A stretch of DNA of 63,601 bases, filler included, from Octopus bimaculoides (Eukaryota), in the NCBI RefSeq assembly GCF_001194135.2. It is 6 parts of 6 records of this genome, joined end to end, with 100 filler letters (N's around TTAATTAATTAA, not from the genome) between each part and the next. Parts side by side here need not be neighbours in the genome. Positions count along the whole stretch, not along the records: positions 40,840 to 56,872 come from NC_068983.1; 5 more parts are not named here. One strand, 5' to 3'. A program made the translations under genes and the position numbers. Below are positions 41,963-55,303 of this stretch, piece after piece (the first letter of the stretch is position 1; every line of letters starts with the position of its first letter). Below the pieces are notes generated by a model. It was not told the origin of the DNA and did not search any database. It saw nothing but the letters and a program-made list of their open reading frames with translations.

Positions 41963-42073
41963 TTGACCCTTGCAGCAGTAATCCGTGTCTCTATGGTGGT
42001 TCCTGTTCAAATCAAGGCGCAAACTTTACCTGTCAGTGTAGGCCAGGGTTCAGAGGAAATGACTGTTCTATTA
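41963..42073 (+). CDS. EGF-like repeat exon 1 (DPCSSNPCLYGGSCSNQGANFTCQCRPGFRGNDCSI)
   Basis: ctttcag|TTGAC...ATTA|gtaagc; 111 bp, phase 1-1, C-x4-C-x5-C-x8-C-x-C-x8-C. Confidence 0.93.
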
Positions 42074-42555
42074 GTAAGCGATATTTTCCAATAATCAAAG
42101 TATCATATAAATTTCAAATGAAATATCTACAGCCCTGTTCTATTCAGAAACAGCACATTTCTGAAAAGCAAAATGAAACCAGAATATAAAGAACATGCGT
42201 TATTATATAGTTACTTTTTTTATTAGATACAATTATCGTTTGCTTTTTTTTTATATTTTACATGTTTCAGTCATTAGATTGCGCCCATGCTGGGGCACAT
42301 CCTTGAGGAATATTTTATCGAATGAATCGACCTCAGTACTTATATTATTTAAATCTTGGTATTTATTCTATCGATGTAATAGATAACATTACCGAGTAAA
42401 ATTTAGCTTCCGAATGATTTATAAATGTAGATTAAAGATGTAATTTTAGATAATTTCATTTTGTTTCGTATTTCATCTGATGAGGTATGTTACACACGAC
42501 GTAAACATACTTGATATTCGTTCTTTACTTCATTTGAAATTTTCTTACATATAGG

Positions 42556-42985
42556 CACAGGTATGGCTACGTGGTAAGAAGTTTGCTTCCCAACTTTGGG
42601 CCACGCAGTGTCTTTTATTCTAAGCTCCGGGCTGACCGAAATCTTGTGTGATAATTTGCTAGAAGGAAACTGAAAGAAATCCGTCGTGTGTTCGCGCGTG
42701 TATGTCTTTGTGTATGTACGTATTGGAGTCTGTGTGAGCGGGTGTGTGTGTGCGTGTATGCATGTGTGTATGTGTATCTTTGTGTTTGAGTTTGTCCACA
42801 ACCGCTGGGTAGTCGGTGTCTTTTTGTTTACGTCCCAGTAACTTAGCGGCTTGGCAGAAGGAGAACAATAAAACAAGTACCGGGTTTTAAAAATAAGTAC
42901 TGAGGATGATTTCTTCGACTGAGCCCTTTCAGGTCAGTGCTCAGCATGGTCGTTGTCTAATGACTGAAACAAATAAAAGCTAAAA
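42556..42985 (+). mobile_element. tRNA-derived SINE family C (EGF intron 1)
   Basis: GGCTACGTGGTAAGAAGTTTGCTT head, internal (GT)n, AATAAGTACT...CAGCATGG..AATGACTGAAAC 3' part; reverse complement of 53765-54150. A partial minus copy lies at 42255-42375. Confidence 0.7.
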
Positions 42986-43057
42986 GATATATTCCAATTT
43001 CTGATGTAGAGTTTTATAATAGAAAATAAATAACTATATATTAGTTAAACACGCTAA

Positions 43058-43262
43058 AGTTGGCGAGATGGCAGAGTTGTTAGCGTAACGAACATAATGT
43101 TTAGTGGCTATTTTGTTTTTACGTTATGGGTTCAGATTTCACCTAGGTCGGCTTTGACATTCATCCTCGTTGGAGTTCGATAAAATAAATACTATACCGG
43201 TTGAGCACTGGTTTCGATTCACCCTTCCACTTAAAAGTTGTAGTCTTGCTCCAAGATTAGAA
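43058..43262 (+). mobile_element. diverged SINE family B (EGF intron 1)
   Basis: GGCGAGATGGCAGAGTTGTTAGCG head, GGGTTCAGATTTC, TTCATCCTCG..GATAAAAT. Confidence 0.6.
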
Positions 43263-43726
43263 ACAATTATTTAAAATAGCTTCAAAAATATTTTTTCACA
43301 AATATTTGTAGAAATTTATTCAAGTATATTCTAACAAACCATAATGTCTGTAAGGAGCTCGAATAATAACAGAATTATTCTAGTTTTATTTTCAAATTGA
43401 TTTAACTGTGTCTATAATAACTGTGAAACGAAAAACACGAAAGACGAGAATATTCTCTCTCAGTTCATTAAATCATTGCTCAGCATCAGTTTATTTTAAA
43501 ATCTTACATATAATTTTATCAATATATGGCAGAACTATGGCATGTCGCTTTCAATTCTGTTCGCATTCATCAATCTACAAGGCTATAACATCTTTGTTCT
43601 TACAAGATTATAATTATGTTTCATGCACTAAAATATGGTACACTATGAGTGAACTATTATATGTATCAAATATCCTAAATTATTATTTAGAAGTTAGAAC
43701 AAGATTTTCTTAATTTATTTTTCTAG

Positions 43727-43837
43727 TTGATCCATGCAGTTTAAGGCCTTGTAAATACGAAGGGAAATGCATAAATCATGGCTTTAATTACACCTGTCAA
43801 TGTAAACCGGGATTTAGAGGTGTTGACTGCTCTATTA
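43727..43837 (+). CDS. EGF-like repeat exon 2 (DPCSLRPCKYEGKCINHGFNYTCQCKPGFRGVDCSI)
   Basis: ttttctag|TTGAT...ATTA|gtaagt; 111 bp, six conserved Cys; missed by the ORF track. Confidence 0.93.
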
Positions 43838-44876
43838 GTAAGTGCAAATTATTATTTCAACTGTAAAAGCTCATTGTTTAAAATTAAAATCTAACATGAA
43901 AATTAGATCTAAATGCTCTAAAATCCATGTATGTAAACAATATTGGTTTTAAAGTAATTCTATAAGGCAAATATATTTTAATGAATTATTTCGCTTGATC
44001 GACAAAATAAAGTCGAAAATTCATTTTATCTTTTTCTCGTCTTGGAAATAATGAGTATTTAATAAACGTTATAAAATTGCACTTTTAAAGCAGATGAAAG
44101 CATTTTGGATTTAAGGGTCGCACTTAGAAATTTGTTCCTGCTGTATAACATACAAGCCGTACAGTGTAATTTCCCATGTTCTACGCATCTGAGGCGTTCG
44201 TTTATGTCAAAGAAATTAATATGTGTAATAAAACATTTTAGTTTTAATATATACAAGTACATGTTTATTCAGGACGATAGTAAAACAGCTGTAATAGTTT
44301 ATTTTGTATACCTGCATTTGAAAGAAATTACTGTTAAATATCAATTTATTCACATAAGAACCAAAGTTCTCATGGAGAATAGAATCCAAGAAAATTACGC
44401 TGAAAAGTTCCTGGCTTGAAGGATATCGCGGAAGGCCTGATTGGGAGCCCAACTTTCAGAGTTCTTTTACAGGGCTTAGAAAAATTGAAGGACTGCTGCA
44501 ATAAATGTGAATCTAAGAGAGGAATATATTGAATAAAATCATAATTAACTGATCTTTCTCGTAAAAGCCAGTTTTTACAAAGACAATTCGAAATGTTAAA
44601 ATGTTACTGTATCATTTAATGAATACAAATTTACATTTGTATTTTTATCATTAAGAGATACTCTTAACAGAAATGTAATCTATTACATTTCTGTTACATA
44701 TTTTCATTAGTTATAATATTTTTTCTCAAACCTTTTCAGTTTCCGTAAAAATTAATACATGTGATATTTATATCCTCTTTCTGAAATGATATTCTGATGC
44801 TGCATCATTCTCAATTATTTAACGAATATATTTTCATTAATGTTCATATGATATAAACTTTATTTTATATTTTTAG

Positions 44877-53008: not shown

Positions 53009-53445
53009 GTAAGACAACATTATTCAGCAAAGAAACCAAAAACAAACTCATGAGGAATAAATGTAATGCGTATCTTGGCTTCCCTTCCCCTATCAACAGC
53101 GTAAATCAACTGCTAATATACAGCAGTCATAAACTAAACTAGCGCCGTGATAGGCAGCATAATTTGAGTGTACGTGCTTATGTTGGCCCGTCATTAGTAA
53201 AACAATATCTATAGCATAAATATATGTTTATATTCTTGTTTGCCTCGTGTGAGTTTTATAACGTTTACATTTATTTAAGTTCTGATTTACGCTGTGTTGG
53301 CCGTAAAATAAATATCATATCATGTGGTGTGTGTGTGTGAATGCTTATGTATGTGTGTTTGTCTGAGTTTCTGTGTATGTGTGTGCATGTGTCTACGTGT
53401 AGACGTAACTGAAATCACTTCAGCGTCGTTCTGTTATAATTTTAG

Positions 53446-53556
53446 TGGATCCGTGCAGCAGTAATCCCTGTCAGAATAATGGACAATGTTCAAACAGGGA
53501 CTCAGATTTTGTATGTCAATGTCTGCCCGGCTACAGAGGAGTTGATTGTTCCATAA
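53446..53556 (+). CDS. EGF-like repeat exon 9 (DPCSSNPCQNNGQCSNRDSDFVCQCLPGYRGVDCSI)
   Basis: aattttag|TGGAT...ATAA|gtaagt; 111 bp. Confidence 0.93.
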   Translation, partial: WIRAAVIPVRIMDNVQTGTQILYVNVCPATEELIVP

Positions 53557-53764
53557 GTAAGTTGAACATGTTACCTTTATTCTTATTGGCATACTTAAAT
53601 GACTCTTTATACCACCCCGTCGTTGTATTTTAGATTAATGGACGTATCCAAGCTGATCGGCTTCTCGCCCGAAGCAGATACAGCATGTTATTTTGATGAG
53701 AGCTTCGTTAAATTGCAATGATAAGTTCTAATCTCTTAGTAATGCTCATATATACATACATACC

Positions 53765-54150
53765 CTTTTACTCTTTTACTTGTTTCAGTCATTTGACTGC
53801 GGCCATGCTGGAGCACCGCCTTTAGTCGAGCAAATCGACCCCAGGACTTATTCTTTGTAAGCCTAGTACTTATTCTATCGGTATCTTTTTGCCGAAGCAC
53901 TAGGTTACGGGGACGTAAACACACCAGCATCGGTTGTCAAGCGATGGTAGGGGGACAAACACAGACACACAAACACATATACATATGCATATATATACAT
54001 ATATACGAAGGGCTTCTTTCAGTTTCCGTCTACCAAATCCACTCACAAGGCTTTGGTCGGCCCGAGGCTATAGTAGAAGACACTTGCCCAAGGTGTCACG
54101 CAGTGGGACTGAACCCGGAACCATGTGGTTGGTAAGCAAGCTACTTACAT
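53765..54150 (-). mobile_element. tRNA-derived SINE family C (EGF intron 9)
   Basis: (TACTCTTT)n tail, GTGGGACTGAACCC B-box in reverse complement. Further copies at 14820-15030 and 25365-25570 (+, 3' halves) and at 59478-59645, 60950-61020, 61400-61545 (-). Confidence 0.85.
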
Positions 54151-54834
54151 ATATATATATATAACTATCTATTTAACTATCTACATACATACATACATAC
54201 ATACATACCTATTCAACCTGTGCCAGACTTACTAAGAGGGAAATTTATCCTCAAACCTCTTCATCTTCTGCAGACTCTTGATAATCAACATCCTGTGACT
54301 CTCTTGTAAATCTGAAAAATACTCACCTCCTTGCAGAATTGCTGTAAGTTGGTGGCGTTCGGTGAAAATGGTGGACACCAAATCATATATATTATGTTAT
54401 TATAGTTCAAACTATATTATATAATATAATTCAAACTATATTACAGCTGTCTTTACTTTCATAAAATTTCTTCATTGATGGCATATGTACCAATGCACCA
54501 ATCCGCTATTTTCCCACTTTGAAAATAACGCTTATATATTCCAGTAACAAAACTAATATATATTACATACTTGTTAAAAGATGCTTGTTTTTCCCACTTT
54601 CATATTTCCTGTATATATTTCATATCCTAGATATCTCCATTTTTCCATACAACAATCTCTTAAATTTTGTGTCTACTATACCATTCTATGTGTACTATAC
54701 TAGATTATATACCTATACCAATTCAATGAATAACTTTCTCTACCAATTATACACTTTATCATCCTGTTTTCTTTTTTATTCTTTGTTAAATACTAATTTA
54801 TATTTTGATACAATCTGATTAAACTGGCGCTAAA

Positions 54835-55045
54835 TATTGGTTTCGAATTTTGGCACAAGGCCAGCAAGTTCGGGGGAATGGGTATGTCAATTACATCGGC
54901 CCCAGTGCTCAACTGGTTGTTATTTTATGGACTCTGAAAGCATGAAGAGCAAAGCCGACCTCGGTGGCATTTGAACTCAGACGGACGAAATGCGGCTAAG
55001 GAGTTTTGCCCGGAGTGCTAACGATTCTGCTACCCCACTGCTTTA
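54835..55045 (-). mobile_element. SINE family B (EGF intron 9)
   Basis: GGCACAAGGCC...GCATTTGAACTCAG...GTGCTAACGATTCTGC, reverse complement of family B. Confidence 0.75.
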
Positions 55046-55192
55046 CTGACGCTAAATATTAACCAGTTCACATGATGAACGAAATGCAATTTACTTGGAG
55101 ATTCAGCTAATTAACATAACTTCCATAATAAAAACAACACCACGAACTGAACTATTTTCTGTAAATTCCTTTTCTGGTTTGTTTATCTACAG

Positions 55193-55303
55193 CGGATCCC
55201 TGCAGCAGCAGTCCATGTACTAATAATGGAGATTGTTCAAATCAAGGAGATGATTATAAGTGCAAATGTCTTCCTGGTTATCGGGGAAAGAATTGCTCTA
55301 TAG
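55193..55303 (+). CDS. EGF-like repeat exon 10 (DPCSSSPCTNNGDCSNQGDDYKCKCLPGYRGKNCSI)
   Basis: tttatctacag|CGGAT...ATAG|gttcgt; 111 bp. Confidence 0.92.
   Translation, partial: RIPAAAVHVLIMEIVQIKEMIISANVFLVIGERIAL

Follow-up and report, generated by a model that had tools for sequence, protein, structure and literature searches.

We analysed a 63,601-nucleotide stretch of DNA from Octopus bimaculoides (assembly GCF_001194135.2; hereafter the window, to which all positions refer unless another locus is named), in which the part taken from NC_068983.1 carries an array of exons encoding epidermal growth factor-like (EGF) domains. The readable piece spans 40840-56872, has a G+C content of 36 % and contains four runs of N inside it or at its edges. 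A six-frame scan of this piece for the stop-free pattern C-x4-C-x5-C-x8-C-x-C-x8-C returned exactly ten matches, all on the plus strand, and no match was returned from 200 shuffles of the piece. When each match was extended by 8 nt before its first cysteine (C1) and by 7 nt after its sixth (C6), ag/ and /gt bounds were reached (the slash marks the splice boundary), defining an exon of exactly 111 bp in 10/10 cases (Table 1). All ten exons are phase 1-1, the intron falling after the first codon base on both sides, and each encodes one domain. One EGF domain per symmetrical phase 1-1 exon is the classical exon-shuffling module.

The exons lie in three different genomic frames, which means that the cassettes can be joined only by splicing. 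A single long open reading frame (ORF) was ruled out, as the frames differ and stops intervene, and an assembly artefact was ruled out because the copies are only 55-71 % identical at the DNA level. The codon split by each junction is composed of (A/G)+(TT/TC/CT/TG/CG) and encodes I, I, A, V, V, V, V, V and T in genomic order; every cassette starts with DPC and ends with CS(I/V/T) or CDI. Because the final base of the exon is always A or G, any exon-exon join is sense and in frame. The acceptor tracts are T-rich, with pyrimidine fractions of 0.64-0.77 except at exon 5 (0.45), and the donors read gtaag six times, the remainder being gtagg, gtatt (twice), gtacg and gttcg. Exon 1 is preceded by AG and is therefore internal; since exon 10 is in turn followed by GT, the gene extends past both ends of the piece, which starts 1.1 kb ahead of exon 1 and stops 1.6 kb past exon 10. 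Profiles built from the ten copies and run with nhmmer and hmmsearch uncovered no eleventh or decayed cassette on either strand, and tblastn of relatives and Pfam scans of the other ORFs revealed no non-EGF exon in the piece. An earlier note on this DNA had reported ten 111-bp phase 1-1 EGF exons with AG/GT sites and the above Cys spacing, free of stops and frameshifts, joinable in frame in any subset and lacking both gene ends. The scan and the shuffles show this description to be accurate: all ten copies are open and keep all six Cys, stop-free joining of any subset follows from junction codons that start with A or G, and neither end of the gene lies inside the piece.

Table 1 Cassette exons and associated features of the array, with one exon of a related locus.
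Feature	Positions	Strand	Peptide or length	Remarks
EGF cassette exon 1	41963-42073	+	(V)DPCSSNPCLYGGSCSNQGANFTCQCRPGFRGNDCSI	acceptor ttcag/, donor /gtaagc
EGF cassette exon 2	43727-43837	+	IDPCSLRPCKYEGKCINHGFNYTCQCKPGFRGVDCSI	
EGF cassette exon 3	44877-44987	+	IDPCSTDPCKNGGSCTKQGTDFVCKCIPGFKGKTCDI	
EGF cassette exon 4	45961-46071	+	ADPCGSKPCLNDGVCINEGTSFKCICKTAYSGYVCSV	most diverged copy
EGF cassette exon 5	46526-46636	+	VDPCSSSPCLYGGKCSNQGTNYICQCQLGYTGNDCST	weakest polypyrimidine tract (0.45)
Intron 5	46637-48466	+	1830 bp	holds gap 47156-47165 within (TA)n/(CA)n microsatellites
EGF cassette exon 6	48467-48577	+	VDPCSSNPCHNGGICSNVNTSFSCQCQPGYRGNDCSI	
EGF cassette exon 7	51601-51711	+	37 residues	donor gtacga, unlike gtaag of six exons
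Intron 7	51712-52897	+	1186 bp	holds gap 52398-52407 in SINE-like repeat
EGF cassette exon 8	52898-53008	+	VDPCSSQPCHNGAVCMNKGRNYSCQCLPGYRGFNCSI	
EGF cassette exon 9	53446-53556	+	VDPCSSNPCQNNGQCSNRDSDFVCQCLPGYRGVDCSI	
EGF cassette exon 10	55193-55303	+	TDPCSSSPCTNNGDCSNQGDDYKCKCLPGYRGKNCSI	donor gttcgt, unlike gtaag of six exons
Predicted tryptic peptide from the ten exons (example)			GNDCSIIDPCSLRPCK	
VWA exon, O. vulgaris locus L002	26013-26579 of L002			single exon

The 369-residue peptide obtained by joining the ten exons gave ten matches to the Pfam EGF family PF00008 (E = 8.5e-65), scoring 214.9 bits where the cut-off is 21.5. One cassette was modelled with AlphaFold, the other nine serving as the alignment, and the model (mean predicted local distance difference test score, pLDDT, of 91) contains strands at residues 13-17 and 20-24. 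The domain thus has the six Cys of an EGF-like domain, spaced compatibly with 1-3, 2-4, 5-6 disulfide pairing, and its two-stranded hairpin, and scores above the gathering threshold. The model superposes on solved EGF repeats with template modelling (TM) scores of 0.92-0.95 and root-mean-square deviations of 0.5-0.8 A. The top structural matches were the EGF substrates in crystal structures of POFUT1 and POGLUT1, with Notch1 EGFs next, and the PDB sequence matches were the Delta-like 1 and Notch1 EGF arrays, which were nearest, and the mussel foot protein PVFP-5. The unit comprises 37 residues including a 5-residue S-I-V-D-P linker. The start D/N-x-D/N-E/Q-C1 of calcium-binding EGF (cbEGF) domains is absent, as the earlier note had recognised: every unit reads (I/V/A/T)-D-P-C1, with Pro in place of E/Q. 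Calcium-binding EGF was ruled out on this basis, and PF07645 (cbEGF) scores far below PF00008 on the joined peptide. The D/N and Y/F positions that cbEGF domains have between C3 and C4 are present, as C-x-N-x4-F/Y-x-C, in 9/10 units.

The repeats carry consensus motifs for modification. The O-glucose consensus C1-x-S-x-P-C2 is found in 8/10, the O-fucose consensus C2-x4-(S/T)-C3 in 3/10 and the Asx-hydroxylation consensus C-x-N-x4-F/Y-x-C in 9/10 repeats, together with six N-glycosylation sequons across the ten. Such glycosylation and hydroxylation motifs are well-known hallmarks of EGF repeats that are secreted or extracellular. These motifs suggest that the POGLUT1 and POFUT1 sites may be used in this protein. 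The joined peptide has a balanced charge and contains 4.1 % Tyr.

Similarity between the copies stops about 6 nt beyond the exons in self-BLAST, and the introns cannot be aligned, having only interspersed repeats in common. The copies show mean identities of 57 % at the amino acid and 61 % at the nucleotide level, and identities of 72, 69 and 43 % at the three codon positions. By the Nei-Gojobori method, the proportion of nonsynonymous differences (pN) is 0.28 and that of synonymous differences (pS) 0.82. Synonymous sites are saturated in 32/45 pairs, and the remaining pairs have a median nonsynonymous-to-synonymous rate ratio (dN/dS) of about 0.17. Unalignable introns and saturated third positions indicate that the duplications are ancient, and the small number of replacement changes indicates long purifying selection with every copy kept intact, which argues against a pseudogene. 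Serial exon duplication under purifying selection, already proposed from the first reading of the sequence, agrees with the codon-position identities, the pN and pS values and the loss of alignment between introns.

The proteins nearest to the array were secreted proteins, all from octopods. In Argonauta hians, a protein named 'adhesive plaque matrix protein 2-like, partial' (P0036) has a VWA domain ahead of four EGFs, and its aligned repeats share 62 % identity with the joined window peptide; in the family of this protein, single repeats reach 69 % identity to the window (74 % in tblastn alignments). The Argonauta locus L001 (BAAFZT010000052.1) contains 17 AG..GT-bounded cassettes, exactly 111 bp in 17/17, with the junction ag/TGGATCCA...TCTATTG/gt as in the window, together with a single VWA exon at 10001-13000 of the locus, and a gene with VWD, TIL and PAN domains lies directly upstream of this VWA-EGF array. 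O. bimaculoides XP_014776970.1 (P0213) is composed of a signal peptide, five EGFs, a VWA domain, five EGFs and a VWD region, and P0282 of O. vulgaris, which bears the name 'neurogenic locus notch homolog 2-like', adds PAN domains to this type of layout. The O. vulgaris locus L002 (OX597816.1) has one VWA exon and two sets of cassettes, 14 or more near-identical N-terminal ones and five of the VDPCSS type, with exact 111-bp length and AG..GT bounds in 14/14 of the N-block and 4/5 of the C-block. The junction common to the window and its relatives is ag/T[TG]GATCC ... TCTAT[AT][GA]/gt. The octopod VWA/VWD-EGF family and the window therefore have in common the 111-bp phase 1-1 exon, the 37-residue unit, the Cys spacing, the (I/V)DPC start and the CSI end, and the cassette and junction that characterise the family are those found in the window. 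Cassettes within the window are on average 57 % identical to one another; compared with them, those of the Argonauta array average 56 %, those of the O. vulgaris C-block 53 % and those of the N-block 47 %. The window differs from the family in that no VWA, VWD, TIL or PAN exon was seen in the piece, which does not include the gene ends; tblastn of P0036, P0213 and P0282 matched EGF exons only.

Two claims of the earlier note go too far in the light of these relatives. The array had been taken for a lineage-specific gene, but no fewer than two further octopod loci (L001 and L002) contain this cassette, and the family is octopod-wide and not a one-off. Its design had been regarded as unusual, but one EGF per phase-1 exon is textbook, and uniform non-calcium repeats are present in at least three other octopod genes.

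The related arrays differ from that of the window in age. In L001, two near-identical cassette types alternate between 13116 and 25321 as A/B pairs (KYGGECRNKGDKYVCSCVPGYRG... and KHGGHCTNNGSNYNCTCLLGYRGDDCAI), and the A/B exon-plus-intron units are 81-95 % identical, a pattern that indicates a recent or homogenised two-exon super-repeat. In both L001 and L002, exon and intron were duplicated together: the units are 80-95 % identical over 400-860 bp, which shows that tandem duplication in the family is recent and ongoing. Array expansion in these relatives has been recent and independent. The window array is old (57 % mean identity), whereas mean identities of 72-81 % and introns that are 80-95 % identical mark the Argonauta array and the O. 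vulgaris N-block as recent. The available gene models of these loci depart from the exon structure seen here. The Argonauta annotation splits the rest of the L001 array into 74-residue 'genes'. The 37-residue period in the N-terminal part of P0282 (LIHAIADLARTVAYVLEEDGASAVNADLDIADETVMH, repeated) corresponds to the cassette read in phase 0 rather than phase 1; at L002 2461-24318 the correct frame gives NPCHSRPCKNGGVCIGRGRSFSCKCRPGYSGRNCHA, and the O. vulgaris gene model is mis-phased. Some of the 14 or more L002 cassettes lie upstream of the annotated start, and the O. bimaculoides RefSeq model has five.

A product of the window locus was sought among known proteins. Word-indexed protein searches were performed with the 369-aa joined peptide, a 723-aa VWA+EGF composite and a 185-aa five-exon peptide. 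These searches return matches of only about 0.6-1.75 times the query length (maxima 646, 1266 and 321-324 aa), covering jointly about 105-1265 aa; short queries therefore miss long proteins with many repeats, which limits statements that a homologue is lacking. A hidden Markov model (HMM) profile of the ten exons, searched against 1.84 billion representatives, gave 30,248 EGF-protein matches. The best 150 of these included no window exon peptide and no protein with more than 46 % identity to the joined peptide, in a library that contains O. bimaculoides RefSeq proteins (XP_014776970.1 was matched). Exact look-ups of two window ORFs gave no match. In the literature, no mention of XP_014776970 was found, a paper on the Argonauta egg-case matrix held nothing relevant to the array, and nothing useful was found on an octopus adhesive plaque matrix protein. 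Runs with a 37-residue period comprise ten units in the window, 14 in O. vulgaris and no fewer than 16 in Argonauta, and the longest such run among 385 retrieved EGF proteins has seven. The strict 37-residue uniformity of the array is therefore mildly distinctive.

Among characterised systems, the sea-urchin fibropellins and the mussel foot proteins Mfp-2 and PVFP-5 are secreted structural or adhesive proteins of marine invertebrates with long, mostly non-calcium EGF runs. The automatic names of many matches derive from fibropellins and mussel foot proteins, and PVFP-5 was itself recovered as a PDB sequence match. However, identity of these proteins to the window is only about 35-45 %, a level that implies no orthology. 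Fibropellins are CUB-like at the N-terminus and avidin-like at the C-terminus, and Mfp-2 is set apart by its description as rich in 3,4-dihydroxyphenylalanine (DOPA) and Tyr, compared with 4 % Tyr in the window peptide; its name reaches the octopod family only through the automatic annotation of P0036.

A closer functional parallel is octovafibrin (XP_014771937.1), the main protein of O. bimaculoides egg tethers and cases (Wonderly et al. 2023, PMC10336842). In octovafibrin, 29 consecutive non-calcium EGF repeats stand between an N-terminal and a C-terminal C-type lectin domain, the repeat having Cys at 5, 10, 16, 25, 27 and 36, D/N at 3 and Y/F at 23 (PMC10336842). In a coarse-grained model each EGF domain was represented by 37 monomers, and the regular disulfides were found to provide stiffness, toughness and hidden length in load-bearing, extensible fibres (PMC10336842). 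When the window unit is begun at x-V-D-P-C, its Cys fall at 5, 10, 16, 25, 27 and 36, with D at 3 and F/Y at 23, which is the octovafibrin register. Both are octopus proteins with tandem non-calcium EGF repeats modelled as 37-residue units. Octovafibrin, a secreted structural protein, differs in its flanking C-type lectin domains and in its 29 repeats being more diverged from one another. For what such an array does, octovafibrin offers the best model with an experimental basis; with respect to identity it is a minority rival.

Taken together, these comparisons make it probable that the array forms a glycosylated EGF rod in the interior of a larger structural protein, secreted and belonging to the octopod VWA/VWD-EGF family. 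Several points weigh against this interpretation. Expression, constitutive splicing and secretion are predicted from the sequence, as are the glycosylation, the VWA partner and the mechanical role. Neither gene end lies in the piece, and no signal peptide and no VWA, VWD, TIL, PAN or lectin exon was found there. The family assignment is one of EGF-cassette similarity only: window cassettes, which are on average 57 % identical among themselves, average 56 % identity to those of the Argonauta array and 53 % to those of the O. vulgaris C-block. No annotated product of the locus was found, and the word-indexed searches, over about 105-1265 aa, yielded nothing above 62 % identity. In addition, no one-to-one exon orthology with Argonauta is visible in the readable part of the gene.

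Other explanations account for part of these data. The array could be the octovafibrin gene, its ortholog or a recent paralog, given that the animal group is the same, that the two share a design of non-calcium EGF repeats in tandem, each modelled with 37 residues, and that the register is exactly as reported (PMC10336842). Yet none of the 22 published octovafibrin tandem mass spectrometry (MS/MS) peptides occurs in the six frames of the window or in the retrieved proteins, and those peptides, for example CDCKPGYCGPLCTK and CTCKPAYVGPR, reveal much more diverged repeats. The top 150 matches contained no protein close to the window repeats although the library holds O. bimaculoides RefSeq, the piece, outside which the gene ends lie, has no C-type lectin exon, and the nearest cassettes are linked to VWA rather than lectin domains, which makes identity with octovafibrin unlikely. 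A signalling or polarity receptor (Notch, Crumbs, DNER, Delta/Jagged or Eyes shut) is suggested by the many matches named 'neurogenic locus notch homolog', 'fibropellin', 'crumbs' or 'DNER' and by DLL1 and Notch1 as best PDB sequence matches. The arrays of Notch, Delta, Jagged and Crumbs indeed share with the window the EGF fold (TM >0.9), phase-1 exon modules and the O-glucose, O-fucose and Asx-hydroxylation motifs. Their identity to the window, however, is only 30-46 %, against 62 % for Argonauta P0036 and mean cassette identities of 53-57 %. Moreover, these receptors mix calcium and non-calcium repeats of variable length, about 38-40 residues, whereas the ten here are uniformly non-calcium with a period of 37, and the longest uniform 37-residue run among the 385 retrieved EGF proteins falls three short of the array. 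LNR, NOD, ANK, MNNL/C2 and DSL domains are all absent from the piece, with the gene ends lying outside it, and O. bimaculoides DNER (P0114) is clearly different. The 'Notch' names of the octopus relatives are automatic, and the proteins that bear them carry VWA, VWD, TIL and PAN domains. We therefore consider a receptor highly improbable.

Two further readings concern how, or whether, the cassettes are used. Combinatorial skipping, leading to a length-variable secreted or surface protein and possibly to a Notch-pathway mimic, is formally possible, as all exons are phase 1-1, every junction codon is sense and any subset stays in frame. Two deviant donors, gtacga at exon 7 and gttcgt at exon 10, and the exon 5 tract (0.45) could permit regulated inclusion, and copy number differs between species at the related loci. 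The same skippability, however, holds for every phase 1-1 EGF array, including those of Notch, fibrillin and LDLR, most of which are constitutively spliced, and the long individual conservation of each exon argues that each is used. The mimic, which the earlier note had also entertained, finds no support, as the piece has no DSL, MNNL, C2 or other Notch-binding element, no LNR and no other non-EGF exon, and the nearest relatives carry VWA, VWD, TIL and PAN domains; we regard combinatorial skipping, with or without the mimic, as very unlikely. It is quite unlikely, too, that the locus is an unannotated octopod structural gene, related to the VWA-EGF and octovafibrin-type fibre proteins, whose cassettes are spliced in regulated combinations that tune the length or stiffness of the rod. 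If this were true, regulated inclusion would yield a tunable extracellular rod in egg case, sucker or skin secretion, which octopod lineages would re-tune by rapid exon gain and loss. Finally, a dead or never expressed pseudogene fragment could be suspected from the missing gene ends and from the lack of any annotated protein or gene call in the collections searched. Against this, 10/10 copies keep the frame, the six Cys and the splice dinucleotides with pyrimidine tracts, despite saturated synonymous sites and randomised introns, and no decayed copies accompany them. Neutral decay over such a time would have brought stops and indels, and there is hardly any likelihood that the array is a pseudogene.

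In the favoured interpretation, an EGF rod of a VWA/VWD-EGF-type structural protein, the piece would be an internal part of a larger multi-exon gene with at least ten consecutive non-calcium EGF domains. The array would have arisen by tandem duplication of an exon-plus-intron unit, as is still visible at the two related octopod loci, and would then have ceased to homogenise and been long frozen. Spliced in series, the exons would give a rod or spacer that is locked by disulfides, carries O- and N-linked glycans and, going by typical EGF dimensions, measures an estimated few tens of nanometres. This rod may belong to a secreted structural protein of the matrix, mucus, egg-case or adhesive type, the likeliest parent being the signal-peptide-VWA-(EGF)n type that adjoins the VWD/TIL/PAN gene in Argonauta hians. 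By analogy with octovafibrin, for which this was shown experimentally, the repeats would have a mechanical and scaffolding role and not that of a signalling ligand.

The gaps and repeats of the piece were also inspected. At the gap in intron 5, the left contig ends in tatatagcat and this motif recurs about 50 bp into the right contig; the 10-N gap in intron 7 is placed between exact 35-bp copies of ctacttaatctatcgaccccgaatggaagaaaggc (52363-52397 and 52408-52442). Both 10-N gaps are probably unmerged contig overlaps joined by a spacer, and neither can shift the frame because each exon is self-contained and phase 1-1. An extra cassette hidden in either of them is unlikely; one is possible in the 474-N gap at 41233-41706, which lies 257 bp upstream of exon 1. 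Intron 6 contains inverted repeats of about 220 bp with 80 % identity (49942-50161 and 50639-50857) that flank a 112-codon ORF on the plus strand (50243-50581), whose weak helix-turn-helix match does not reach the Pfam threshold, and the whole element (49942-50857) looks like a DNA transposon relic. On the minus strand of intron 5 (47789-48214), short ORFs have C2H2-type zinc-finger motifs, such as FVCTVCDRPCLSFAGLKSHLRTH, that fall below the Pfam gathering scores and probably represent a decayed fragment of a mobile element or of a zinc-finger gene. Repeats resembling short interspersed nuclear elements (SINEs) were located at 40840-41134, 42607-42987, 52279-52789, 53761-54148 and 54832-55032 and recur several times, with 74-94 % identity, in the O. 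vulgaris locus. In all, 12 intervals of interspersed repeats find O. vulgaris counterparts, the best of them 94 % identical, and Argonauta copies are barely matched, which marks the source as an Octopus-like octopodid; Argonauta matches only a repeat core of about 100 bp (54006-54102) at 81-91 %. The segment 52409-52707 is a 300-bp self-complementary palindrome (81 %). No tRNAs or Rfam families were detected in the piece, including the SINE-like repeats. Intron 4 has a 38-bp minisatellite at 46243-46441 (about 5.4 copies, 69 % matches) and direct-repeat similarity between 46169-46406 and 46282-46515, and the introns in general are rich in (TA)n, (ATAC)n, (TC)n and (TATC)n microsatellites.

The general principle of EGF gene construction is unchanged by this array, one EGF per phase-1 exon being an ordinary design for matrix proteins. 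The three loci expose annotation problems: that of the window has no retrievable gene model, the Argonauta array is fragmented and the O. vulgaris model is in the wrong frame. The window array is apparently a new, so far unannotated member of an octopod EGF-polymer structural protein family. It is a clear addition to a small octopod group of genes with uniform 37-residue EGF cassettes, comprising an old, frozen array here and still-expanding arrays in Argonauta and O. vulgaris. Considered with octovafibrin, it suggests repeated use of non-calcium EGF polymers as structural materials in octopods, which is relevant to biomaterials and to how repeat proteins grow.

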